Of a stretch of 64,000 nt of DNA, positions 35,376-63,109 are shown in pieces. Source of the stretch: Lepidodermella squamata (taxonomy: Eukaryota; Animalia; Gastrotricha); assembly GCA_047495785.1 (NCBI GenBank), contig JBLDXI010000024.1:3224001-3288000 (forward strand). Reading direction: 5' to 3'. Position 1 is the stretch's first letter. Each line of letters begins with the position of its first letter. The notes under the pieces are model-generated. The model was not told the DNA's origin. It searched no databases and worked only from the letters and a program-made list of their open reading frames with translations. A program made the translations under genes and the position numbers.

Positions 35376-37343
35376 TCAGCAATCAGCCGTCGATAGACAA
35401 CAAATGATTTTCTTATTAAGGCTGTTTTCATACGGTAAATATTTAGCCGGTGAAGCCGGTTCAACCCCAAGATGAGAGGTGAAACGCGTGAAGTGCTGAT
35501 GGAAGTCCTTGTACAACGTGCTCGCCACGCTTGATGTGAAGTCACAATGTAGCGGGCAATGGAGGGGCAGACCCCAGCGTTCATTAACGCAAGTTCGAGT
35601 TGTGTTACTGAGAAAGTCGAGAAGCTTATAAAACATGGCCATTCGCTGCTCGGAAGCCGGTTGTCTGGACATGTAATGGTATAGGGCCATCTCATAGCGG
35701 GAACGAATTACTTGCAACTGTTTACGATCACTCACATTGACAACGTCTTAAAAATCAATTGCAAATTAATGAATTTATTTTGTGGTCCAAGAAAAAATAC
35801 CTGGATTCAAGCAGACCACGGCACACATGAGGGCGAATTCTTGAAGGTTGCTAATCAAGCTGGTCACTCGATTGCCCGCAGCACAAAGATAATTTTCCAG
35901 TAAGTAATGCTTCGCCGTTCGCTGGCCAACTAAATGCCAAGCGAAGTTGCGGTCAAGGGACATGTTATTCGGCAATTGATGCTCAACATCAAACTGCAGC
36001 GACATCTGCGCAATTAAAACAGGGAAGAAGGCATTAGCGAAAAGCACAACGCGATCTTGCATGTTGATCATACTGGTACCAGGTAATTGGTTCATGAACT
36101 GGCTTATCGCTGTAATGTAAACATTAAACGATTCACATCTCTGGTAAACCAAATCCCTCTCAGCGGAGGCAGTATCTGGTAGGTTGGTGGGTACGACGAT
36201 TTTGAAGTCAGAAATCGGAGCCAATCTAACAGCAGCCTCAGAAACTCGATCCAGAAGCCATTGCGAGGCTGAGAAATCGCTATTACCAAGCAAGCCATCG
36301 ATAGAAGTACATGGGACTAAGCTAACGTTCAAAGAGCTGCATGCTTTAGGATGGCTGATGATATCATCAAGATATGAAAACTTTAGGTTGAAAGTTTCTT
36401 CCGTAATATCAAGGAAATCATCGTCAGCTGCCGTAGACCCGGAAGAGGAGACAAAACTACTTCGCGGTTTTGGCGAATCTTCGCGATTCGAACGAAATGA
36501 AGCTGGAATACTTGTTAAGGAACCTTGTTTGCTAGTATTCTGGGCTACATGGTTTCGATTACGTCGAAAAACCGGTTGATCGAGCACGGAATTCTCTCGA
36601 GCTAGCTGGCGAACTTTTTCCTCGATATCGTGCCGCATTTCCAAGGTCATTCTGCCCATGGAAACGTCTGTAAGTGACATTCCAGCATCGATGCAGCGCT
36701 GTAAGCGGCACTTCCGGCAGTTTGAAGATCCAGGGCACATTTCATTATCTTTGCCCTGCTTTTTACACTTGTATTCAATACGGAATTCACCCTGCATCGA
36801 TCGACGGTAGAACCCCTTACAGCCTTCGCAAGATATGACGCCGTAGTGGTAGCCGGTACTCGAAATTCCGCAGATGACGCATGGAATTTTTGTGAAATCG
36901 AATTTAGAGGATGACAGGCCCTGATCCGTTTTGTTCCTCCTCCTTCTCATGGCTTTAGGCCGATCAGGAACAGGGCTTGGATTAGAACTATCTGTGATAA
37001 AGTGCTTGCAAGCCTGGAATTTGCAGTAGCGACAGTCCTTTGAAACACCTGGGTTGAAGTTGTTGCCTTTGCAGCCGCAAGAGCAGACAAATCGGTCCCC
37101 GGTTTTGATATGCCGGTTGTAGTAGCGCTATAGAAATGAAAATTGCGGATAAAACCAACTTTGAAGTCGTTTTTATACCCGGCAAGATTCGCAAAGTATC
37201 ACGAGACTTGGGGCAAGGGGCTTGCTGCCTGCTGGGACCTTCCGCTTTGCTGCTTCAACTTGCTTACAGCAAACCATGCAATTGAAAGAGGCATTTTGAG
37301 CTTTATTGTTGATATGGATTTGTTTGGATACAAGTTGTGACAT
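35376..37343 (-). CDS. Nuclear receptor with two tandem DNA-binding domains (2DBD-NR), 3 exons
   Basis: Exon 1 37179-37343 (55 codons, below the ORF-track cutoff) CMVC..CESCR; exon 2 from 37127 RYYNRH..CSCGC..DCRYCKFQAC, then [35 protein letters not shown] and LBD (FMNQLPG..QDRVVL; EFALMCAVV..NP). Confidence 0.85.
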
Positions 37344-37951: not shown

Positions 37952-39602
37952 TCAGCTTTGCGTTTGACAATTTGGGGAGGTTAAGCAACACTTGATACGC
38001 TCACCATTCTCATTTTCATACGGCAAATAAATAGTTTGCTTCGGATGCAAAGCGTCATAGCGAGGCGTAAATCGTGTAAAATTCAAATGAAAATCTTTAT
38101 AAAGTGAACTGGCTGCATTTGCCGCAAAGCGGCAATGCAGTGGACAATGAGCCGGCAGGCCCCACTTATTGAATTTGCTAACACGGGTGGCGCTCTGAAG
38201 AAACAGAATCAATTTCTGGATAGCGGCCAATCGGACGTTTGCACGAGGCTGCTGTATAACGGAATGGTAGAGAGCCATTTCGTACCGAGCTCGAATTTCT
38301 CGAAGCTTCGCAACATCGTCCTCGCTTGCATTTTCTGCCGAATAAATTGGGATGTTTTAATCAAAAATCGATATTATGTTAGTAAAAATTCAAGAAAGAA
38401 AGCAAAATGAAGGTTCATGTTGTACTCAATTTTAATTTGATCGACTCTATCTCGATCGAATCTGAACTCTCACCTGGATTAAAGTAGACAATAGCGCAAA
38501 CCAGAGCGAATTCTTGTAGATTGCTGACCGAGTTCATCACCAAATGACCAGCCTCCATAAAATAGCTCTCCATAGCAATATGCTCCCCCTCGACACAACT
38601 AGCAACCAAACGCCAAGCTGTCTCTCGATCCAAAGACATCGTATTCGGTTGCTTCAGCTGCGCGTCAAATTGAAGGGACAACTGCGCGACAAGAAGAGGG
38701 AAAAAAGCATTGGTAAACATGACAACTCGGTTTTGAATATCAATGCCACTGCCTCCAGGTAGGCAGCTAATAAAGTTACTAATGGCGGTTACATAAACAT
38801 CGAATGAATCCGAACGTTGGTAAATGTAAGAACGTCCAGCGGCTTTAGCATCCTTCCAGTATTCTGGGATAACGATTCGGATGTTCGATATTGGCGTCAA
38901 TTTAGCTGCGGCTTCTGCTATTCGCTCAGTCAACCACTGAGAGGCTCGGTAGTCGCTGTTGTTCAGCAGACCATTGATAGGGGTAGCTGGCACTAGAGCT
39001 CCATCCAATGATGAGCTAACATCAGGCTGACTCAACGAGTCGTCAAATAATGGTTGGCTATCATCATTCAGAATTTCATCGATGTCATCAGCGTCGAGAA
39101 AAATGCTATCGTCATCGTTAGAATTTTCGAATTGGGAATTTTCGGCTGAAGGCTGAAAGCTGGACGTTGATGGGTTAGTCTTAGTATTACCACGGCGCAA
39201 CTTTGGCTGGGCGACTTTTTCTTCCGCCATCAGTTTAACCATTTGCTCCATTTCTAGACGGAAAGCGGCTGACATTCGGCCCATAGTAACCGTTGTCAAG
39301 GACATGCCCGCCTCGACGCATCGCTCGAGTCTGCACTTTCGGCAGTTGGACTTCCGCGGGCATTTATCCGGGGCGATAATGCGCTTGCATCGGTAGGTTA
39401 GGCGATATTTTCCTCGCATTGACCGGCGGAAGAAGCCCTTGCAACCCTCGCAAGAAACGACTCCGTAATGGTACCCGCTGCTGGATGCCCCGCACACATC
39501 GCAAGGTATGGCTGAGAAATCAAACTTTGACGGTTGCTTTTTCCCGGATGAAACCGAGTTGACAGGTGAAGAAATGCCAGAATCTGCATCGCATGTGTCC
39601 AT
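37952..39602 (-). CDS. Nuclear receptor, single-DBD tandem paralog, 2 exons
   Basis: [36 protein letters not shown]; LBD and WGLP.HCPLHC tail homologous to the neighbour; same intron position after NP. Confidence 0.88.
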
Positions 39603-39858
39603 TTCTACGTCTATTTCTGATGTTTTCGCTGCAAAATTAGCGAAGAATACGCTTATCAACCTCGTCACATGACTTGAGACATGCCGTCTATTAGCCAAAT
39701 AGCGATAAGAGAGCGGTAAAGGTTACAGCTGATAAGGGAAACGGTCGCCGTTGAATCATTGAAACTTTCTGGAAGGATCGTGTAGTTTTATCTAATCTCA
39801 GGACTTTTTATTTGAGTGGCGGTTTTGAACCAGCGCCAGTTTTAGCAATAACTTTATC

Positions 39859-41822
39859 ATGGAGACGCGAGCAAGGTCATTTGAAAAGCTGAGGCTTTAT
39901 TTTAGAGACTTCCTACAAAGAGCTTTAACTGATGAAGATGCTGCTTCACTGGTTAAGAGCAACAAGGAGCTCATCCGTCAGTACAACTTCCAGAATTATC
40001 TGCTTGCAGTGGCAGCCAATCGCATTGATTGTGCCAAATTTTTGGTGGATGACCTTGAAGCAAGCATTGATGCAAAAGTCGCGATTGATATTCATTGGAG
40101 ACGTGAGTATTGTATTCTGCATTGGACTTGCGTTCGGGGATCGTGTGAAGTTGCCGCATTTTTGTTAAAAGAGAAACGCGTTAAATACGATGGCATCAAG
40201 CATGATTTCGGTGGAGATTATGTTCATCTTGCAGCATGGTATGGTCAAATTGACCTAATGAAAGTGTTCAGAGAACATGATAAGGAATGTTTTGAAAAAA
40301 CGATCAAAGCTAACAACAATCAAAACAGCTCTAAACATCGATCAGCCCTTCTGGCAGCTGCAACCAAAGGAGAGAAGGAAACTGTCAAGTATTTGATAGA
40401 TCTGTTTGAAGAGATAGGCTTGAAACCAGCTGAATGTCTTGATGAATCAAATGGCTTCTCAGCTTTGCACATCGCTGCTGTCAAAGGTTACGGCGACATT
40501 GTTACGGTTCTGAAGGACAAAATACCTCAAGGAAAGGCCAGCAAATCTATCAAAGGCAGCTACTTGGGTAGCAGAACACCAGGTCAGCTAGCCTATCTAC
40601 GTTGCCATACCGACGTTGTTGAAGCCTTAGGAGAGCTAGAAATGCATGGCGATTTGGATGACGAACCATAGAGCGAAGTAGGGCCGCGGAACTGCTGGGG
40701 ATCACAAAAATCGACATAAGGGTCCCCCCTTTGGTCATTGAATGAGCTCACCGTACGGACCGATGGAACTGGTAGGGATGATCCCTACCATCCCTAGCGG
40801 TACTTCGCTCTCTGTGACGAACGTCAGTTTGAAGCTTGGAATCAATTCCTGGTAAATATATACGCCATCCAGACTGGCTACTTTGTATTCCATCCAGAAC
40901 GTGGTGCTGTGGCCAACAAGTGTACTGGCATTTTGCAATGGGATCCAAACAAATTAGCAGCAGAGAGGCGTAGAAATTATATCATTTCGAGATATGATTC
41001 TCGAGAGCGAATGCAAGTGATCATTCGGACAGCTATCATTGCGATAAATGCAACTGTGGAAGGATTTTATTTGGAAATGCAGCGTGAACTGATTAGCCGA
41101 GTAGACAAAAAGATCGTAGAATCGAAGACAACTGATGAATTCCGTGACGTGAATTGAGAGAATTCTGTAACCCTCGGTTGGACAATTTTCTTCATAACTT
41201 GACGTGGGGGAAAAATATTGGCCAGCAGCTAAGTAAACTTCGCCTCGAATTTTCGATTGTTTTGAAAGGACGGAAGATATTATATAGTCTCTCAAATAAT
41301 TGCAAGAAAACACTCGGAGATTTATCTACAATGTATTTCGCAATGCGATGCATATTTGGGCAAAGAAACCCAGATTACACGAAGAACAATACCTTAATTG
41401 AATTGAAAAAGGATTTCACTGAGCGCCAATTCAGTATGAACAAGGGAGTTGCAGATTACTTCAACTATATTCTGAACGGGCTAAGAAATTATAATAGAAC
41501 GATCGGTTTCGATATAGAGTTTACCGATTACATTAACTGCTTGTTATTTTTTCGAGACCTCGCTTGGGCTGTTCACGCTGCTACTATGGTTGCGCTTGGT
41601 GATTGGACGGTTGAAAATGCGAAAAGAGTCGCTCAGAGCTATGAGCTTGAAGTTATGGGGGAATGGACTATTCCTGGTGTTCCATTTCCACTATTTTATA
41701 ATGATGTTTGGATGGAATACGCTTACGGCTGTCCGTCATTGGCGAAATCGATAGACGGGTCAAATAACAACTCTGCTGAAACCTCAAGCAAAAAGCGAAA
41801 ATTAAGCTCTGAAACAAGCTGA
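39859..41822 (+). pseudogene. Intronless ankyrin-repeat gene with disrupted C-terminal domain; the 270-aa ANK portion 39859-40671 is intact
   Basis: ILHWTC, VHLAAWYG, SALLAAA, SALHIAA repeats. ORF 40909 is in the same frame after three in-frame stops; frameshift near 41155. Confidence 0.6.
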
Positions 41823-43645: not shown

Positions 43646-46600
43646 ATGCTCGGCTTTGGATTATTCTTATTGGATCTAGCTTTGACTAAGGCATACTTGA
43701 CATGCCAAGGCGGCGTCCATCAGCCACAATATTCGTATCTCAATCCAGCGAACAGATCCGCTAACTGGGACTACTACTACTTTCAAACTATGTCAACAGC
43801 ATCGCAAAATCCCGGTACCACCCGCTTACTCGCAGAATCGACAAATACAGACGGCGCAATGTGGGCTAAAACGGTAGATTTCGTTGATATTCAAAAAAGT
43901 CTTATGAAGATGATTGCTTAACCCAGCCGTTCATGTTGAATGACTTCTACGTCGAGGCTACCGTGCAAATGGGCAACTTCAATGGATTGCCAAACGGATT
44001 CCAGCTGCTATTCGCTAACCCAGGCTCAATAGTACGACCCGCCTCGGGCTTTTTGACAGCAGATTCCAATCGGAAATTCGGGGTTCTTCGAAGCTTTTTT
44101 ACAGGCTAGCTCAGTTCAGTTATGAAAGTTCAATTTTTAACTAAGATTTTCGTTCTTGTTAGGTTTTTCTCTCAACGTTGGGGCTTCAAACAGCATTTCA
44201 GTGAAATATATCACCAACGCAAACTCGGCTGCATTCCTTGGAAACTGCACATCCGCCATGTCTTGCGTTACGCCTTCAAACTGGACCGAATTCATAAACA
44301 CCTACCTACTCACACCAGCAAAATGGCGACTCAGAGTTCTATCAGACAAAAGTTTCAGTTACGAAGTCTGTGCTGCAAACGGTACCAACTGCAGACTCTT
44401 GGCCTACGACCAATTCTTGGTAGACACGTTCCAGGGGGCCTTTCTGAACTTGGATCTACGACTCGGCGTTGTTGCAAGTAACGGAGGCTCTTCATCGGCT
44501 TATGTTGATGTGTACAGCGTTGAAGTCTGGGATTGTGGATCAACGCCCTATGTATCCCCGGTTCCGGCCAATGAGCTGTCGTGCTTGGGCGATCTGCAAA
44601 CGCAGTTCTCTTACGATAATAAAAGCGACATAGGGACGAAATGGGACTACTACTACGCGTCTAACTTGGACACGACGAATTTATCCAGTGAAGCGACTCG
44701 CCTAATATCGAGTACAACATATCAAGTCGGCTCGATGTGGTCCAAATCGGTATGTGTCTCGAGTTGTTTCAAAGCTAAATAAAATTTAATTCCAAAGAAT
44801 TTCACCTTGAATGACTTCTACATCGAGCTGACAACGGACATGACTCAGTCTTGGATACAGGCTATTCAAACCTGGTCCCATGGGTTCGGAATTTTTCTCT
44901 CCAGCCAGGCTGGAATTTCGAGGCCAAGCCCAGTCAACAACCTAACGAACCCTGGAGGAAGGGAGTACGGTGTGGTAGCAAATGCCTTTACAGGGTTCAG
45001 CATTTACATTCGACCCTCGATTTACGGAATCGCCTACACTTTCATCCGGACACCGAATGCTTCGTTGTTCTGGAATAGTGGCAGTTTATATCATGGAAAA
45101 TGGGCAAACATGGGGGCGGTTTTTGTCGAAAATTTCATGATAAGAAGAGCGACCTGGCAGATTCGGATCCTGCACAACTTGCTTCAAATTAATGTTTGCA
45201 GGTACAACACCGACTCCTGCCAGCGTACGATCACGGCAACGATGAACACATCGATTTCTGAAGTCTTTGGATCTCAAGATTTGGCGCTGGGTTTCGGGGC
45301 GTTGAATGAAGCGACTTCGGCGAGTTCTGTAGATATTGTCTCAGCTAAGGTTTGGAGTTGCTACCCTACTACGACTGTTCCAACAACATCTACTACGACA
45401 TCCACAACGTCTGAAAGTACTACAGCAACTACAACAGTTACTTCAACTGAATCCACTTCGATAAGCTCGACCACGGCCACGACAAGACCATTAACGAGTG
45501 CAACTTCTACTTTAAATCCTTCAACTTCGTCTACGTCAAAATCAACTACACCAGTCATTTACAGCTCATCGGATGGGTCTAATTCATTCTCATCATCAGC
45601 ATCAACTCCAAAGTCTGTCGTAAGTTCAATTTAAAAACGGATTTAAAGAGTCTTCATTCCCTTTCCACAGATGAAATCAGACCCAATCATATCAATGCAG
45701 ACCGACTCTAAATCAGAAGGAGTCTCAGGTTCCATTTTTTGGCGAAAACCTAAACAACGTAAAAACTTGTTTTATTTCCATCAGTCGATTCAAGCGCATT
45801 TTCACGTCAAATTGAGCGTGTCAAGACATCAGCGGACCAGAAATTGCAGCAGTTGATCGAATTATCAGGCCTCGGCCCAGCTCTTAACGATCTCCCCATT
45901 GAGATAACAGTTGATATGATTAAAAAGGTCTGTGAAGACTTCTTACCATCTCGAGCTGCTCCGCCGTTCTACGGCAATGATTCATCTGGTACGGGTCTGA
46001 AAATTCAACCAGCTTTTGCAGTGGATAACTTGGTCGATGTCGATACTGCTGGAGAGACAATCTCGGTTGTGGGGACATTAATGCTAACCTGGACTGTCGC
46101 GACATGCCCTTCTGATAGCATCGACACATTCACAGTTCGTCCCTTCGAACAGCTTTATGTCGCAAAAACCAGTGAAGGTAAGAAATCAAGTGTTAGATAC
46201 GGATGTTGATTGATCCCCATTTCAGTATGGACTCCGGCTTTCAGATTCATAAGAAGTGCCGCTGCGAATGTTTACATGCAAGATAGCCCCGACTTCGGAG
46301 AGGACCTTATTACAACAATGCGGAGATACTCAAACTTCCCAAATCGAACCATCGACTTCATCTGGCTGAAAGACGGATTGTTCAGAGCGCTTTGTCCCCT
46401 CGAGTTAGCCGACTTCCCATTCGACAGCCAAACATGCGTTTTCACGTTCTCACTGAACCGAGCCATCAATTTGGTCACTTTCGCTAACCCTGTATTCATT
46501 TGGCTGGGCGGGGAAGAATCGTCCAATTGGTCTTTCGAGGGCAGAAATTCAACCCTGATTCGTCTCATCTATAAGGGAAAGCAGACAAGCTCTGTGGTAT

Positions 46601-47040
46601 ATAGTGTCACTCTTCGCCGAAATCCGACTTATTATCTGGCCAATCTAGCTATCCCAAGTGCTGTCCTAATGGCTGTGGAGTTCGGTTCCTTCCTCATCCC
46701 ACCCGAAATGCCTGATAGATCTGGCTTCTCGATGACAGTCCTCCTCGCGATTTCAGTCGCTCAATCCGGTGTCGCTAGCAACGTGCCAAAAACGACGCAG
46801 CGAATCTTTCTAGCCGACTACATCTCAGCACTGACGTGGCTCTGCGGAGCTTGCACCTTGTACCAGCTGGCTACGTGTTGCTACTCTAATGTAGCTCGGC
46901 ATACTGTCATAGACTCGAATTTACCGGCAATTTTCAAGGATGTTGGTTTTGTTCGAGTTTTCGACATCATTTGCTGCACATTGAGTATCATTGGCTTCAT
47001 TGCTATCAATTGCATTCTGGGGTATCTTTACCAAGGATGA
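43646..47040 (+). CDS. Cys-loop ligand-gated ion channel subunit with two N-terminal L-type-lectin-like domains and a Ser/Thr stalk (copy 1, ~1000 aa)
   Basis: Signal peptide; twice WDYY..TRL..G.MW.K.|.F.LNDFY.E.T; S/T run; VDNLVDVD..LMLTW, WTP, Cys-loop CPLELADFPFDSQTC, RRNPTYY-M1, PDRSGFSMTVLLA-M2, M3, M4. Linking exons splice in frame. Confidence 0.85.
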
Positions 47041-47556
47041 CAATTTTATATTTGGAGACAAATCGGTTTCCAGGGACTCATCTTAATATCTTCTATATAA
47101 ATTGTGATGATAATCTCGCCTGTTAAATACACATGGATAATCCATGCTACGTGTTTGTCACAAAACTCTCTCTTTTTAGACTTCTTTGCATTTCTGTGCA
47201 TTTATTATGAAGATATTTAAAAATATTATAATATTATGTTTTTCAAATGCTTGATTGGCGTTATACTTTTTGCAGATATCTATTTACCGTCCGGAGTTGA
47301 AAAATAGCCATGCGTTGGAGGTAGAATTTTGTAAACAAGGGGGCGTTGAATTATCAAATTTCGATTTTTTCGAAAAGTGTTCTAAAGTGGCTATTTACAT
47401 TCGAGCTTGGCACATCTCGCAAATTTTTCCGAGTGCTCGCGAGTACCGCATTAATTATTTAATAACTGTGTCTAAAAACCTTTCCACGCCTGAAACAAGA
47501 TTCTAAACCCTCGGCAAGATTTTGGCATATCCAGTAGAGTAAACTCCCCTAAGAAA

Positions 47557-50500
47557 ATGCTTGGTATCGCGATAATTTTGTTATCGTTATTCGCCGAAAT
47601 TATCATCGGCTTGTCGATATGTCCAGGAGGGGTTTATCAACCTCAATATTCCTATGTGAACCCAATGAATCGATCAGTAAATTGGGATTACTATGTTGCC
47701 CAAAACATGTCTGTAGCATCTCAAAACCCTGGAACGACACGACTGATATCAGAATTTTCCAACACCGATGGCGCAATGTGGGCTAAGACGGTAATTTTCG
47801 CAATTTCGACGCTATTTTCCATTTTTTTCGGTTCTTCCAACCAGCCATTTACCTTGAACGATTTTTACGTTGAGCTGACCGTGGGAATGGGGAACATCAG
47901 TGACTCGACAGAGGGCTTTCAGCTAATCCTCGCGAATCCAAGTTCAGTAGTGAGGCCGAGCTCTGGTTATTTGAGTTACGATGCTAAATTAAGATTTGGG
48001 CTATTGCAAAGCTTCTTTGCCGGTAAACATTTATAAAAGAATGTTTTCCCAAAAATATAAATTTCTCGTACTAGGTCTCGCCGTTGGAGTGGGAGTTAAC
48101 AATAGTGTGTCAGCAAAACTTGTAACAAATGCTATTGCAGCATCTCTCGAGGATGGATGTTTTTCCGGAACTGGTGTTGGATGCTTTACCCCGTCAAACT
48201 GGACAGATTTCTCTAGCCGCTATCTGACATCTGTTGCTAAGTGGAAGATTCGAGTGTCTTCAAATGCTAGTCTCAGTGTAGAAGTTTGCTCCGCGAGTTG
48301 CCAGTTGCTTATCGACAATCGTTACATGCCTAATAACATCCAGAACGCGTTTCTTAACCTGGATTTGCGCCTTGGGGTTGTAGCCAGTAACGGAGCATCA
48401 ACCACCAGTTACGCTGATGTCTACAGTGTTGAGATATGGGATTGTGGAACAACGGCCTATGTTTCAAGCGTGAGTTGAAAATGCTTGGCTAGCATGAATC
48501 AAGTCTTGTTTCCAGGTACCGAATGACGAATTGGCTTGCTACGGCAATCTTCAAGCGCAGTATTCATATTCGGGTACCAGCGATATCGGGACAAAATGGG
48601 ACTACTTTTACGCGGCAAATTTAAACACATCGAATGTAGCAACTGGTGCGACACGTTTGGTCGGAAATACCTACAGCCAAATTGGTTCAATGTGGTCGAA
48701 ATCGGTGAGTTCCAATGAAATTGAGCTAGCATATCAATTCCATCATCTTTTAGTTCTTTTCGCTGAATGATTTCTTCATGGAGTTGACGACAGACTTAGC
48801 CCAACCATGGATAGCTCTGGGTAGTTCGAACTGGGCGCATGGATTCGGCATTTTCGTTGCGAGTCAAGCAGGAATTTCACGCCCTTACCCAGTTAACAGT
48901 CTATCGAACCCTGGCGGAAGGGAGTACGGTGTTAAATCAGCCTCTTTTACAGGTTAGTGGCCCCGCGCCTACTTTTTATACATAAATAAATCCTAAAGTA
49001 TAGGTTTCAGCATCTTTATGAGACCATCAATCGCTGGGTTAGCTTACACCTTCGTACTGAATCCAAACGGTACCTTATTTTGGAACGGCGGATCGTTATA
49101 CAATGGCCTCTGGAAGAACATGGATACAGTTTTTGTGGAAGGTTTCCTAACACAACGAGCTACATGGCAGATTCGAGTGAATGGGACTTCGCTGAAAATC
49201 AACGTATGCAGATACAACACAGATACATGTGCTCGGACGATCTGGGTAACTATGGGATACTCGCTTCAATCAGCTTTCGGGAACCAGAACATGTCCCTGG
49301 GTTTCGGCGGGTTGACAGATGGCCTTGCCACAAGTTACGTCGACATAGTATCTGTCAAAGTCTGGGAATGTATTCAAACTACTTCTACGTCTTCAACAAG
49401 TACTACGACATCGCCAGTTTCAACGGTTCCCTCTAGCACAGCCTCAACTACTACAGTTGGAGCCTCAACTTCATCAACTGGGACAAGCGTTGGGTCCACA
49501 AGTGGTACCACAGGATCCATTGCCATCTCGAGTACATCGGTAGCAAAAACCGCCACATCCAACGACGCGTTTACTTCAACAATCTCTAATCAAGTTTGTC
49601 CTTATGACTAGAAAAGGTTTTCCTGAACATTTCCTTAGGTTTCATACGCGTATAGTCCTCAGCCCTCTGTTGCGAGTTTGAAACAGAACGAGTTTGAGAA
49701 AGGGCCATATTCAGGTATAAAATTGTCAGTTTAAGCAATTCGTGTTTGAACTTCCATTGCATAGATCCGAAAATCACTTATCGACAGATCGATCTAATAA
49801 GAAACTCAGCTTACCAAAAACTTCAACGCCTTATAGACTTCTCTAGTCTAAGTCGAATAACGGACGAGTTACCGATGGAAGTGAATATTGGCACGGTGAA
49901 ACAAGTCTGCGAGGATTTCCTGCCATTTCGCACAGCTCCGCCTTATTACAGCAACGATTCATCGGATACAGCTCTCAAAATTCGAGTAGCATTTGCTGTA
50001 GATAATTTGATAGATCTTGACACGGCAGGCGAGACAATTTCAGTTGATGCAGCCCTGATGCTGTCCTGGACAGTTTCAACGTGCCCCTCGGATAGCATCG
50101 ATACTTTCACGACAAGGCCCGTCGAACAGCTCTATGTGGCTCGCCCGGATGAAGGTAGAGGGTAGTTTCAGTTTCAAGATTTCTAAAATTTTTTTGCTTC
50201 TTTCCGAAGTTTGGACCCCAGCGTTCAGGTTCATAAGAAGTGCATCAGCTAATGTTTATATGCAATCGAACCCTGATTTTGGCGAAGACCTCATAACAAC
50301 GATGCGACGGCCTGCGGACTCCCCGAATAGGACAATTGACTTCATCTGGCTAAAAGAAGGATTGTTCAAAGCAACCTGCCCTCTAGAGCTCGCCGATTTC
50401 CCGTTTGACCAACAGACTTGCATTTTCACGTTCTCATTGAACCGAGCGATGAACTTGGTCTCATTCGCAAATCCTGCGTTCATCTGGCTCGGCGATGAAG

Positions 50501-51021
50501 AATCAGCGAATTGGAGGTTTGAAGGGCGAAATTCTTCCCTCATTTCACTACGGTACAAAGGCAAGCAAACAAGTACGGTGGTTTATGGAGTCACCCTAAG
50601 ACGAAATCCGACCTATTACTTGACCAATCTCGCCTTGCCATGTGCAGTGCTGATGGCTGTAGAATTTGGGTCATTCCTAATGCCACCAGCTATGCCAGAT
50701 CGAGCAGCGTTCTCGATGACTGTTTTGCTAGCGATTTCTGTCGCACAATCAGGAGTTGCGAGTAATGTTCCGAAAACTGCGCAAAAAATCTTCCTGGCGG
50801 ATTACATATCTGCTCTAACGTGGCTATGTGGAGTTTGCACTCTGTATCAACTGGCTACTTGTTGCTATGAAAATGCAGCCAAGAAAACAGATCCAGATAC
50901 AATGTCTAAAGCTCTGCGAAAACTTGGTTTTGTGAGACTGTTTGATATTGTTTGCTGTGGTTTAGGTATTGTTGCTTTTTCCGCAGTTAATATTTACATG
51001 GCAGCAATTTACTACACGTAA
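47557..51021 (+). CDS. Lectin-like-domain Cys-loop channel subunit (copy 2, tandem paralog)
   Basis: Same architecture and shared intron positions; CPLELADFPFDQQTC; PDRAAFSMTVLLA. Confidence 0.85.
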
Positions 51022-54720: not shown

Positions 54721-56667
54721 TTAGGACTTTGGGCTTCGGTCTTCGGCCGCGTTTTTCGATGATGGGAAGACGGTTGCATACTGACTTTCGAGGCAGCTAA
54801 TAAGGTAATTTCGCATGTCCGTAGAGGATTTGAAGCAGGTCACACCAGGATCGCCGCCATCGATGAGAAGAAGTAAGCATGCAGCTGCGAAAATGCCGCA
54901 ATCGGTGCCGTTTGATTGCCTCGGACATGGCTCAAGGTGAACCTTCAGCCGCCCGTCTCCCATCAGCAACCGGTACCTATCCCTCAGTTGGGCGCGAAGC
55001 TCTTCATCCATTGACGTAGCCGGCAAAGAGTCATAAACTGCAACCTTGCGGTGGAAAGTAGTCGACAAAACCCAATGGGTGTTTCTGATGTTATGGAAAT
55101 AAAATCCTTGTTCGCCCGAACTGAAATTTGTGTGTAAAATTTTTGATGTCAAGCCGTGTCAAATAATTGCGGGTTTTCGGAACTAAACGGATGTAAATGG
55201 CCTGTTTTGGCGATGTATTTTGTTGTAAGGCTCGATAATAGCGGATGTATTCTGAAGGAAGCTGTTTTTTCGCGATGTAATCGGATGGGAGCAGGAACAA
55301 TCAGCTGCAAAACGGCTTACTTTTATTTACTTCACCTAAATTGCTGATGGAAATTGATGTAAAGCTGAAAATTCGCTGTTGTAAACCGATATCAGCGTTT
55401 TCCCTCGGACGAAACTCCGGACCGACCTCCCCGAGAGGGCTTCCATTTGTTTATTTCATGAAAATAGCCGAAGTAAATCGATGTAATGTGTTTCAGCGGC
55501 CAACTTATTTGGTGTTACATTCGAAAACATCGACACCGGAATCGGTATTGACTGCGTGTATTTCAAAGTACGCGAAATTAAGAAAATTATGGAAAAATCG
55601 CAGTGTCGCGGATTTTATTAAGGAGGCAAATGTATTCGCGAGTATGCAGAGATACGTGATTTTGGGCGATGTAAACCGACGGAAGATGTTAAAAACGCGA
55701 AATTTGATAAAAATTGAAAAAACGAATGACCGATGTTGCGTCATCTGTTTTTCCTTAAGGCATGCGATTGTCTCGAAAGCACGAAAGCCGAGCACGAACT
55801 GATTGAAATTAACTGGTCTTTGTCGACCAAGCAGACGCTCGGGCAATGCAGGTGCTTGAAGAGTTTGAAGGCTTCTCCCACGCTCTCGTCAGTTTCATCC
55901 AGCAGCATTGCTATTGCGCCAACTGCAGTCTTGCCATTGTCACCGTTGGTGAAACAGAAGAGGATCAATTTGTACTCAGCTTTGTTCGTTCCGAATGTAG
56001 TATCGATCACCATTGTCTTCGGCTTTTGCAGTTTCAGACGGGTCAGCATTGCAGGGGTGGAGAAAAACAAGACTTGAGTGAAGCCGTCTTGAGTTACCTT
56101 TTCAGCAACGAAGCCACCTTTTTGCTCGATAGTTTTGAGGAAGTCGTGCAACCGCTCCACTTTAACCTCGTCGCTGACGTCCAGAAGTTTCAAATTCGCA
56201 ACATGCTTCGAAGTAACAGGTTTTCCAATCATTGGCTTGATGTGTTTTGCTGCAGTTCGGTGTTTGATGCACATGTTGCGCGACGTTAACTCCTTTCGAA
56301 ACTGGTCCTTCTCTTCTTCTGTCAGCCTGCAATTCGCTTGATAAGTTGCGAAGTCATCGGCGTTCACCGTGTGGCCTGTGTGCCTAAAAACGGCAGTAGC
56401 TACATGCCAGAGTCCATCTTTCCTTAATGTAAGCGACAAACGCGCCTTGCGCACTCAGAATACAGATAACCTAAAGTTGTACTTGGGTTTCAATGCTCTA
56501 AGAATCAACATTTCCTTACCTTGGTTTTCTCGGACACCATTGCTCTTTGTCGCACGCTCAGTACTGTGGCAACATTCCACAATCAGTTGCTTGGGCATTG
56601 TTGAACGCTTTATGAAAGGCTGATGAGTTTGATCGCAATGCTTCTTCACCTTGCCACGGTTAGCCAC
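54721..56667 (-). mobile_element. Degenerate Mutator/MULE transposase with C-terminal Ulp1/SENP-like (C48) protease
   Basis: FAR1-like N-terminus (..HTGH), MULE core DTTFGTNKAEYKL..NGKT..VDKD, protease HWVL..YDSL..QSNGTDCGIFA. Interrupted around 55300-55745. Confidence 0.8.
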
Positions 56668-61967: not shown

Positions 61968-62501
61968 TATGTATTTTTTTTTACTATCTTGTACTTTCTT
62001 CCGAACTGTGGCATACCGGGAAACTCGCGATCTTTTCGCTTTCATCTCATCGTCTCGACATCCGACGCTTCGGCTTCATCGCAGTGGGGGAGAGTGTGGC
62101 GGTGACAGGTTGTAGCCCCGCCACGCTCTGTTAAACACGCGATTCGCGGTCGCGTGCGCTGCCCCTCTCTCCTCTCTCTTATTATCTAGTTGAATTTCTC
62201 TCATTGTTTCTATAACACTTTCATGAATTTTTACTTACCTACCTACGTACCTGGAACGCCCGTTCCGATCCTAGCCTCTTTGTTGCCTATCAAGTGATCG
62301 GTATGTTCCTAAATCTTATTTCCGTAGCCTCGGGCATACAATATTTTGTTATCAGGACGCGCTTACCTTTTATTCACCTGCATCTGCCCATTTTTTATTG
62401 CCTTGCCTTGTCATCGTCAGAACCCGGTATGCCAATCCGCTTAATCCCGCTGAACTGTCCTCTAAACATTTCCTTTGTACAGGGCCTTGCTTTGAGATAA
62501 T

Positions 62502-63109
62502 AAAAGGGCGAACTATCGACTTGAGTTCTCATTGTCAAACAATTCGTCCCCGCTACAATCCTGCTTTCATCTGGCTTGGCGATGGAGAATCAGGGAATTG
62601 GAGGTTGGAAGGGCGAAATTCTTTTCTCATTTCACTCATTTCACGTTAAAAGGCAAACAAACAAGTACGGTGGTTTATGGAGTCACCCTACGTCGGAATC
62701 TACCTATTACTTGACCAATCTCGCCTTGCCATGTGCAGTTCTGATGGCTGTAGAATTTGGGTCATTCCTAATGCCACCAGCTATGCCAGATCGAGCAGCG
62801 TTCTCGATGACTGTTATGCTAGCGATTTCTGTCGCACAATCAGGAGTTGCGAGTAATGTTCCGAAAACTGCGCAGAAAATCTTCCTGGCGGATTACATAT
62901 CTGGTCTAACGTGGCTATGTGGCGTTTGCACTCTGTATCAACTGGCTACTTGTTGCTATGAAAATGCAGCCAAGAAGATGGATCAAGATAAAATGCCTAG
63001 AGCTCTGCGAAAACTTGGTTTTGTGAGACTTCTTGATATTTGCTGTAGTTTAGGTATTGTTGCTTTTTCCGCAATTAATATTTACATGGCAGCAATTTAC
63101 ATCGCGTAA
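62502..63109 (+). pseudogene. 3' fragment of Cys-loop channel gene (copy 3), frameshifted
   Basis: Near-identical to 50470-51021 but with the Cys-loop partly deleted, indels before M1 and no upstream exons in the window. Confidence 0.85.

Follow-up and report, generated by a model that had tools for sequence, protein, structure and literature searches.

A 64,000-nucleotide stretch of the genome of the gastrotrich Lepidodermella squamata (NCBI GenBank assembly GCA_047495785.1, contig JBLDXI010000024.1, positions 3,224,001 to 3,288,000 of the forward strand; referred to hereafter as the window) carries two paralogous genes, g1 and g2, that join a pentameric ligand-gated ion channel (pLGIC) subunit to a large extracellular extension. 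Each product runs from a signal peptide through two domains of predicted concanavalin A (ConA)-like fold (D1 and D2, together the "heads"), a mucin-like stalk and a helical linker into a Cys-loop domain, followed by four membrane segments (M1-M4) without an intervening intracellular domain. The reading that we favor, at a probability of roughly 55%, is that g1 and g2 are real, constrained genes for lineage-specific modular pLGIC subunits, the heads of which would tether the channel to, or bind, a macromolecule.

We rebuilt both genes from three-frame translations (checked by script), which places them head-to-tail on the + strand (coordinates in Table 1). As the first-pass annotation of the window had proposed, each model assembles as one reading frame from signal peptide through channel, and the four exon junctions flanking the linker exons that it had named (45619/45671, 45728/45785, 49593/49639 and 49714/49765) match the rebuilt models exactly. 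Introns in both genes are 45-58 nt long and of the GT-AG type throughout, except for g1 intron 2, which uses GC-AG; this splice is the only option that preserves the reading frame, read-through meeting a TAG immediately, and the g2 intron of matching position and phase is GT-AG. From the hydrophobic N-terminus of either product we infer a signal peptide. Intron 1 of g2 (47791-47844, 54 nt) is stop-free in frame, and its retention would place 18 extra residues inside the most conserved motif of D1.

The locus is present in one RNA run (X1, Logan contigs of low depth) and one DNA run (X2), both of which we compared with the window over 44050-50040. Word depth in X1 is 4-20 along g1 (44050-47049) and ~0 in the intergenic segment 47050-47450; RNA cover of g2 is weak or absent, with none across its linker exons. 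The GT..AG joint between the stalk exon and the linker exon of g1 (45619>45671) is seen in X1 contigs, and at three further places the loose ends of contigs are identical in every letter to the final 12-14 nt of an upstream exon joined to the exon that follows (g1 45728>45785, exons 5-6; g1 46177>46226, exons 6-7; and 48704>48754, the single g2 junction with RNA support). Because the junctions of exons 4-5, 5-6 and 6-7 are all represented, the stalk, linker and two channel exons of g1 are spliced as modeled. Thus both g1 junctions that had been singled out for an RNA check (45619>45671 and 45728>45785) were found, whereas the corresponding g2 pair has no RNA cover; as g2 is barely expressed in X1, its fusion is argued from homology and coding constraint. 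The X1 contigs also contain many joints between opposite strands, ~100 nt apart and spread over both genes (44050-48905), which we take as hairpin artefacts of contig building that carry no biology.

A more mundane account of the layout is that our models only seem to show a fusion, one gene encoding a secreted lectin-mucin protein and another, downstream of it, the channel. This would fit with the ATG that begins g1 exon 5, with the possible soluble isoform that retention of g1 intron 4 would produce (the protein then ending four codons past the stalk), and with the fact that the whole mRNA is not spanned by any single read. Set against it are the three consecutive splices from exon 4 to exon 7 in RNA contigs, the lack of either AATAAA or ATTAAA between the g1 stalk and exon 6, and two features already remarked upon in the first-pass annotation and borne out by the gene models: a separate signal peptide is missing from the channel part, and the linker exons are common to both paralogs. 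The phases of these exons, moreover, are identical in the two genes even though synonymous divergence is saturated. We regard a gene-model artefact as highly improbable. Hydropathy reveals no hydrophobic segment between the N-terminus and M1, and the N-terminal part contains 10 N-glycosylation sequons, so that heads, stalk and channel extracellular domain must all lie outside the cell.

Comparison of the two copies indicates that most of this architecture is maintained. Synonymous sites are saturated between g1 and g2 (synonymous divergence, pS, ~0.8), and nonsynonymous divergence (pN) amounts to 0.24 for D1 and D2, 0.43 for the stalk, 0.35 for the linker, 0.12 for the channel extracellular domain and 0.18 for the membrane domain. 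Values of 0.12-0.35 against a pS of ~0.8 signify that all parts other than the signal peptide and stalk are under purifying selection in both copies, with the heads diverging about twice as fast as the channel domain. Differences between strains, taken from a small, selected list of the best-supported mismatches between the window and runs X1 and X2, are distributed unevenly: 16 of 19 are synonymous in the linker and channel region of g1 (45843-46942), and 8 of 12 are non-synonymous in the head region of g2 (47604-49469). Given a sample this small and selected, the heads may or may not be under diversifying selection.

The identity of the channel part is carried mainly by the last exon. Taken alone, this exon weakly matches Pfam Neur_chan_LBD (PF02931), at 26.1 bits in g2 (cut-off 26) and 24.3 bits in g1, and gives a further weak match to Neur_chan_memb; a phmmer search of the PDB returns nicotinic acetylcholine receptor (nAChR) alpha7, muscle nAChR subunits and 5-HT3A, of which alpha7 is the best (E 4e-11). 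Both genes have a C-x13-C Cys-loop with FPFD (C-PLELADFPFD-x-QT-C), four hydrophobic segments that correspond to M1-M4 (hydropathy; the alpha7 alignment spans M1 to M3) and an M3-M4 loop of 21-22 residues (22 in g1), upholding the earlier description of a complete pLGIC with a very short M3-M4 loop. The predicted products lack the intracellular domain that eukaryotic members typically have. An AlphaFold2 model of the last channel exon reached a pLDDT of 37, unusable for a fold search, and has four long helices after strands; a homologous-protein search with the channel exon gave one pLGIC of 24% identity, within a length window that excludes relatives of ~1000 residues.

Relative to alpha7, M2 has Asp at position -1' (Glu in alpha7) and Arg at 0', and keeps the 9' Leu. 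The retained 9' Leu and the Asp at -1' lead us to suggest, with reserve, that the pore is probably cation-permeable. Opposite the loop B Trp the alpha7 alignment has a gap, the Cys pair of loop C is absent, and loops A and D, inspected by eye, are also without the aromatic residues of the binding box; the classical aromatic neurotransmitter box thus appears largely missing. Neither this box nor a large M3-M4 intracellular domain, both traits of the neurotransmitter-gated subfamilies (nAChR, 5-HT3, GABA-A and Gly), is found in g1 or g2. The two subunits therefore resemble nicotinic/5-HT3-type receptors in the Cys-loop with FPFD, the M1-M3 alignment, the 9' Leu and the acidic -1' residue, and differ from them in lacking an intracellular domain and the Cys pair of loop C and in having 670 additional residues at the N-terminus.

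Those extra residues are occupied largely by D1 and D2, which are homologous to one another, as the first-pass annotation had recognized (30% identity over 250 residues, E 4e-33). The two domains have in common four conserved Cys and two intron positions, one after MW[AS]K[TS] (phase 0) and the other after F[TA]G (phase 1), and this conjunction of homology, Cys and introns identifies the internal duplication as an old exon-block duplication. Sequence searches with the heads used exon pieces, and each domain is interrupted by introns at the motif that is best conserved, which weakens a negative Pfam result: there was no match at E up to 1-10 for any head exon piece, and none for the stop-free read-through of g2 exon 1, intron 1 and exon 2 that bridges the split motif. 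The exon pieces gave no match to the family profiles Lectin_legB, Lectin_leg-like or Lectin_L-type_dom; PDB sequence searches with the D2 piece and with a seven-fragment profile found chance matches to MORN repeats only, and phmmer with the D2 exon piece found 0 matches among 1.84 billion representative proteins (a library without the proteins of this genome). As far as sequence can tell, the heads are a family without detectable relatives in that collection.

Structure comparison is more informative as to fold. We modeled the g1 exon 4 piece 44798-45367 (190 of the 253 D2 residues) with AlphaFold2 from an alignment of seven homologous fragments, obtaining a mean pLDDT of 60.9 and a pTM of 0.61. 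A Foldseek search of the PDB with this model, the check that had been suggested for the repeats, yielded exclusively ConA-like jelly rolls (PL7 alginate lyases, VIP36 at TM 0.52, ERGIC-53 at 0.53-0.54, a legume-lectin-like domain from Entamoeba, legume lectins and galectins). Among AlphaFold database (AFDB) clusters the legume lectin domain came first (E 4e-5), followed by bacterial PEP-CTERM L-type-like proteins and plant lectin receptor kinases. Realignment of the Foldseek list with VIA gave legume lectins Z-scores of 10.3-10.9 over 154-159 residues, and an independent wide VIA search put the Entamoeba domain on top (Z 10.3), ahead of VIP36 and ERGIC-53 (9.8). On the lectins, the model covers residues ~55-235, which fits a piece that lacks the first 63 residues of its domain. 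Language-model features provide weak leads in the same direction: two different head pieces point to L-type lectin clusters (0.89-0.94), and for the g2 piece equivalent to D1 the Atlas features place a Lectin_legB cluster first (0.90).

We consider the ConA-like fold of the heads, as modeled, well supported and, with moderate confidence, an L-type topology likely. L-type lectins as a group (legume lectins, ERGIC-53, VIP36, Emp47p and the Entamoeba domain) are the best matches of the head model and give its longest alignments, over 151-159 residues at Z 9.8-10.9, with a similar strand order and some motifs that look alike by eye; the heads depart from them in having no sequence-profile match, an apparently missing metal loop and four conserved Cys in each domain. 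The proposal of L-type-lectin-like repeats thus holds for the predicted fold and for the closest structures and finds no counterpart in Pfam or PDB sequence matches, and on the model's evidence the heads are best described as a lectin fold rather than as established lectins.

The further suggestion that the heads bind carbohydrate fared less well. In an alignment made by eye on predicted strands, the heads have Asn, Glu or His where L-type lectins have the Asp that precedes a conserved Gly, and in each of the four domains the strand and loop that in L-type lectins supply acidic metal ligands lack charge and are far shorter. Arcelins are relatives of the legume lectins that are blind to sugar. 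They are among the structural matches of the D2 model, and the heads are like them in the seeming loss of the L-type metal/sugar site.

Between heads and channel lies the Ser/Thr stalk that had been described from the outset, 84 residues long in g1 and 72 in g2, with a Ser/Thr content of 63-67% by composition; by general knowledge of mucin-like regions, we presume it to be O-glycosylated. The linker that follows conserves an amphipathic, helix-like stretch in both genes (RQI..V/I..SA.QKLQ.LI; 45805-45858 in g1, 49782-49835 in g2). That five such stretches might form a collar or bundle above the vestibule is pure speculation.

Taken together, these parts suggest how such a subunit might operate. 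An O-glycosylated stalk of 84 residues would extend ~20 nm, so that a pentamer could hold ten heads ~20 nm over the membrane. The probable target of the heads is a macromolecule outside the cell, either protein or glycan, which they would bind by means other than the canonical Ca/Mn sugar site of L-type lectins; in doing so they would fix the channel to a surface or matrix, gather it into clusters or set its position there, or else catch a multivalent ligand. The heads could in this way take over the localizing role of the intracellular domain that other animal receptors have and these subunits lack, and tension on the tether, or clustering, would offer a possible route to the gating of an orphan channel. 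Because the stalk is long and flexible, tethering or a force/clustering mechanism is likelier than coupling in the style of DeCLIC, a bacterial pLGIC whose N-terminal lobes pack on the extracellular domain; direct allosteric coupling of that kind is unlikely given the ~140 residues of stalk and linker that separate heads from channel domain.

An alternative to tethering would be a glycan-gated ionotropic chemoreceptor, with heads that are genuine lectins and a pore that sugar opens or modulates directly. The nearest folds being those of L-type lectins speaks for it, as do the tandem arrangement of the genes, the approximately twofold faster evolution of the heads relative to the channel domain and the preponderance of non-synonymous strain differences in the g2 head region (8/12), a pattern known from chemoreceptor and recognition families. 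The heads nonetheless belong, by sequence, to no lectin family, and the canonical Asp, Asn and metal loop appear absent, as in arcelins; moreover, the 84-residue Ser/Thr stalk and ~55-residue linker make direct allosteric transmission unlikely and thereby argue against the gating by glycans that the first-pass annotation had entertained. We consider this alternative unlikely.

It is also conceivable that the heads sense nothing at the surface, and act as a built-in folding or export aid (in the manner of ERGIC-53 and VIP36) or as a protective glycocalyx spacer. ER-Golgi cargo lectins are the nearest animal structures to the head model, and the subunits have no intracellular domain to carry trafficking signals. 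Two large constrained domains on a long outward stalk would be costly for a pure chaperone, however, and the Ca/sugar site of the cargo lectins seems to be absent here; we judge this role very unlikely.

One of the closest known parallels in layout is bacterial. Each DeCLIC subunit lacks an intracellular domain and bears a pair of jelly-roll lobes that pack on its extracellular domain (PMC9897478). Along with other prokaryotic pLGICs (fusions to PBP-I, to Cache or to MCP-N; PMC549065), DeCLIC resembles g1 and g2 in that extra domains follow the signal peptide and precede the extracellular domain of the channel; with DeCLIC the likeness extends to jelly-roll N-terminal domains and the missing intracellular domain. 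The g1 and g2 channels might be recent arrivals from bacteria, and exon 6, which encodes the first half of the extracellular domain, gives four weak PDB matches in which the sole pLGICs are two DeCLIC entries (6v4a and 9ftg, E 0.12-0.17; 16 of 29 residues identical to 6v4a across beta1-beta2), DeCLIC sharing the two lobes and a short M3-M4 loop (PMC9897478). These E-values are not significant, however; the second half best matches animal nAChR and 5-HT3 receptors (E 4e-11) and is of the eukaryotic Cys-loop type, spliceosomal introns number 6-8 per gene, no confirmed relative emerged when 185,579 prokaryotic genomes and JGI metagenomes were scanned for patterns from channel and head alignments, and the top-ranking structures matched to the head model do not include DeCLIC. 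A recent bacterial acquisition is, in our estimation, most improbable. DeCLIC-type proteins are bacterial Pro-loop channels with directly packed lobes, whereas g1 and g2 are animal genes with introns, a true Cys-loop, no prokaryotic relatives found in those scans, and heads held away from the channel by the ~140-residue mucin stalk and linker.

Several observations weigh against our preferred reading of tethered modular subunits. At the level of the genes, the GC-AG intron 2 of g1 (44105-44162) has no RNA confirmation in run X1, the g2 linker junctions have no support in the same RNA, and no single X1 contig spans a whole gene, the short contigs linking junctions piecewise. With regard to the pore, the -2' residue is Pro, as in anion channels, and this resemblance makes ion selectivity uncertain. 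As for the heads, the model covers only part of D2, with middling confidence (pLDDT 61, seven-fragment alignment); galectins score nearly as well against it (Z ~10) as L-type lectins do, over ~125 residues only, and the canonical L-type metal/sugar loop looks absent in an alignment made by eye only. In terms of mechanism, the distinction between anchoring and gating is drawn from the stalk argument alone, and the ligand, binding site and current of these subunits are all putative.

How unusual the architecture is depends on where one looks. In the literature, accessory domains have been described solely in bacterial members, and the animal architecture has been called stereotyped (Tasneem et al., PMC549065); the DeCLIC papers state that N-terminal domains have been observed in no eukaryotic homolog (PMC9897478; bioRxiv 10.1101/2025.02.27.640520). 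Our full-text search found no paper on fusions of lectin, ConA-like, pentraxin or LDLa modules to a Cys-loop receptor of an animal; the premise of the first-pass annotation was that animal pLGICs normally lack large N-terminal modules. That premise does not extend to the databases, in which a structure-based look-up of the ESM Atlas, with automatic annotation, gave an arthropod cluster that combines Neur_chan_LBD with Ldl_recept_a and Pentaxin (854 aa, 88 members) and another with Lectin_C (595 aa). These arthropod proteins are like g1 and g2 in being Neur_chan_LBD proteins (595-854 aa) with N-terminal recognition modules, pentraxin also belonging to the ConA-like superfamily; compared by annotation only, they differ in having LDLa repeats and a Pentaxin or Lectin_C module that Pfam can recognize, while g1 and g2 have no LDLa, no Pfam-detectable head, tandem heads and a mucin stalk.

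More distant analogies exist among receptors built on other membrane modules. Plant L-type lectin receptor kinases combine a lectin-fold ectodomain and a signaling membrane module in one chain, as g1 and g2 do, and their ectodomains are among the AFDB matches of the head model. The N-terminal domains of AMPA and NMDA receptors, with which an analogy was drawn for DeCLIC (PMC9897478), are comparable to the heads by functional analogy only. The membrane modules of lectin receptor kinases and ionotropic glutamate receptors are unrelated to those of g1 and g2, and any homology is limited to the common fold. What distinguishes g1 and g2 is that each is a eukaryotic Cys-loop pLGIC without an intracellular domain that carries a tandem ConA-like module of an otherwise unknown sequence family.

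A broader proposition is that g1 and g2 belong to a large, undescribed class of animal "ionotropic recognition receptors", with heads of a pattern-recognition type (ConA-like in g1 and g2) on mucin stalks joined to Cys-loop channels that lack an intracellular domain. Such receptors would turn contact with a multivalent surface (a microbe, food particle, mate or matrix) directly into an ion flux, whether through clustering or through tension on the tether. We hold this proposition to be unlikely.

The surroundings of the two genes contain further features (Table 1). A third copy of the channel 3' end on the same strand (62446-63100) is 92% identical to g2 across the M1-M4 segment (134 residues) and is interrupted by one stop and two frame changes; head, stalk and the first half of the channel domain were not detected upstream of it, and it has the look of a pseudogene fragment left by a partial duplication. 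One of the two long open reading frames (ORFs) with nuclear-receptor C4 zinc fingers also gives a weak match to a ligand-binding domain, and the pair belongs to a receptor cluster near g1 and g2. The transposase-like ORF ~5 kb downstream of g2 is, by its sequence match, a DNA-transposon remnant. An Rfam search of the window gave no match.

Table 1. Positions of g1, g2, their parts and neighboring features in the window (strand as read in the window).
Feature	Positions	Strand	Remarks
g1	43646-47040	+	7 exons, product 1026 aa, in-frame assembly
g1 exons	43646-43873, 43927-44104, 44163-44749, 44798-45619, 45671-45728, 45785-46177, 46226-47040	+	
g1 intron 2	44105-44162	+	GC..AG, weak donor consensus CAG/GCTAGC (slash, splice site)
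g1 signal peptide (predicted)	43646-43702	+	first ~17-19 residues; hydrophobic N-terminus, in-frame stops just before ATG
g1 D1	43703-44560	+	residues ~20-268, exons 1-3, predicted ConA-like
g1 D2	44561-45367	+	residues 269-521, exon 3 tail and exon 4, predicted ConA-like
g1 stalk	45368-45619	+	84 aa, 67% Ser+Thr
g1 linker	45671-45921	+	exon 5 (19 aa) and start of exon 6; ~55 aa
g1 channel extracellular domain	45922-46629	+	Pfam Neur_chan_LBD; nAChR alpha7 and 5-HT3A alignments
g1 beta1-beta2	46012-46068	+	preceded by alpha1-like helix
g1 loop A	46228-46248	+	WTPAFRF
g1 Cys-loop	46393-46437	+	
g1 transmembrane domain	46630-47040	+	alpha7 M1-M3 alignment, hydropathy
g1 M1	46630-46695	+	
g1 M2	46726-46785	+	
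g1 M3	46804-46884	+	
g1 M4	46951-47010	+	stop 47038-47040
g2	47557-51021	+	9 exons, product 1020 aa, in-frame assembly
g2 exons	47557-47790, 47845-48022, 48075-48469, 48516-48704, 48754-48952, 49004-49593, 49639-49714, 49765-50154, 50210-51021	+	
g2 D1	to 48469	+	
g2 D2	48516-49377	+	
g2 stalk	49378-49593	+	72 aa
g2 linker	49639-49898	+	
g2 Cys-loop	50377-50421	+	
g2 M1-M4	50614-50991	+	
Third channel 3'-end copy	62446-63100	+	end of extracellular domain to M4; tblastn and three-frame translation
Long ORF, nuclear-receptor C4 zinc finger (zf-C4)	35775-36950	-	E 3e-19
Long ORF, nuclear-receptor C4 zinc finger (zf-C4)	38415-39698	-	E 9e-20
Ankyrin-repeat ORF	39859-40671	+	
MULE/ZSWIM-type transposase-like ORF	55741-56454	-	E 2.5e-9

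An animal genome therefore encodes constrained channel subunits, one of them (g1) expressed, with ~670 extra extracellular residues and no intracellular domain, a layout that the channel literature says eukaryotes lack; the arthropod clusters of the Atlas show that the databases are ahead of that literature on pLGIC fusions in animals. We expect g1 and g2 to be of real interest to channel biologists: if the heads do bind a ligand or surface, these subunits would link the recognition of macromolecules to fast ion flux in a new way, and would provide a eukaryotic counterpart to DeCLIC in which the action of accessory domains on a channel may be studied.

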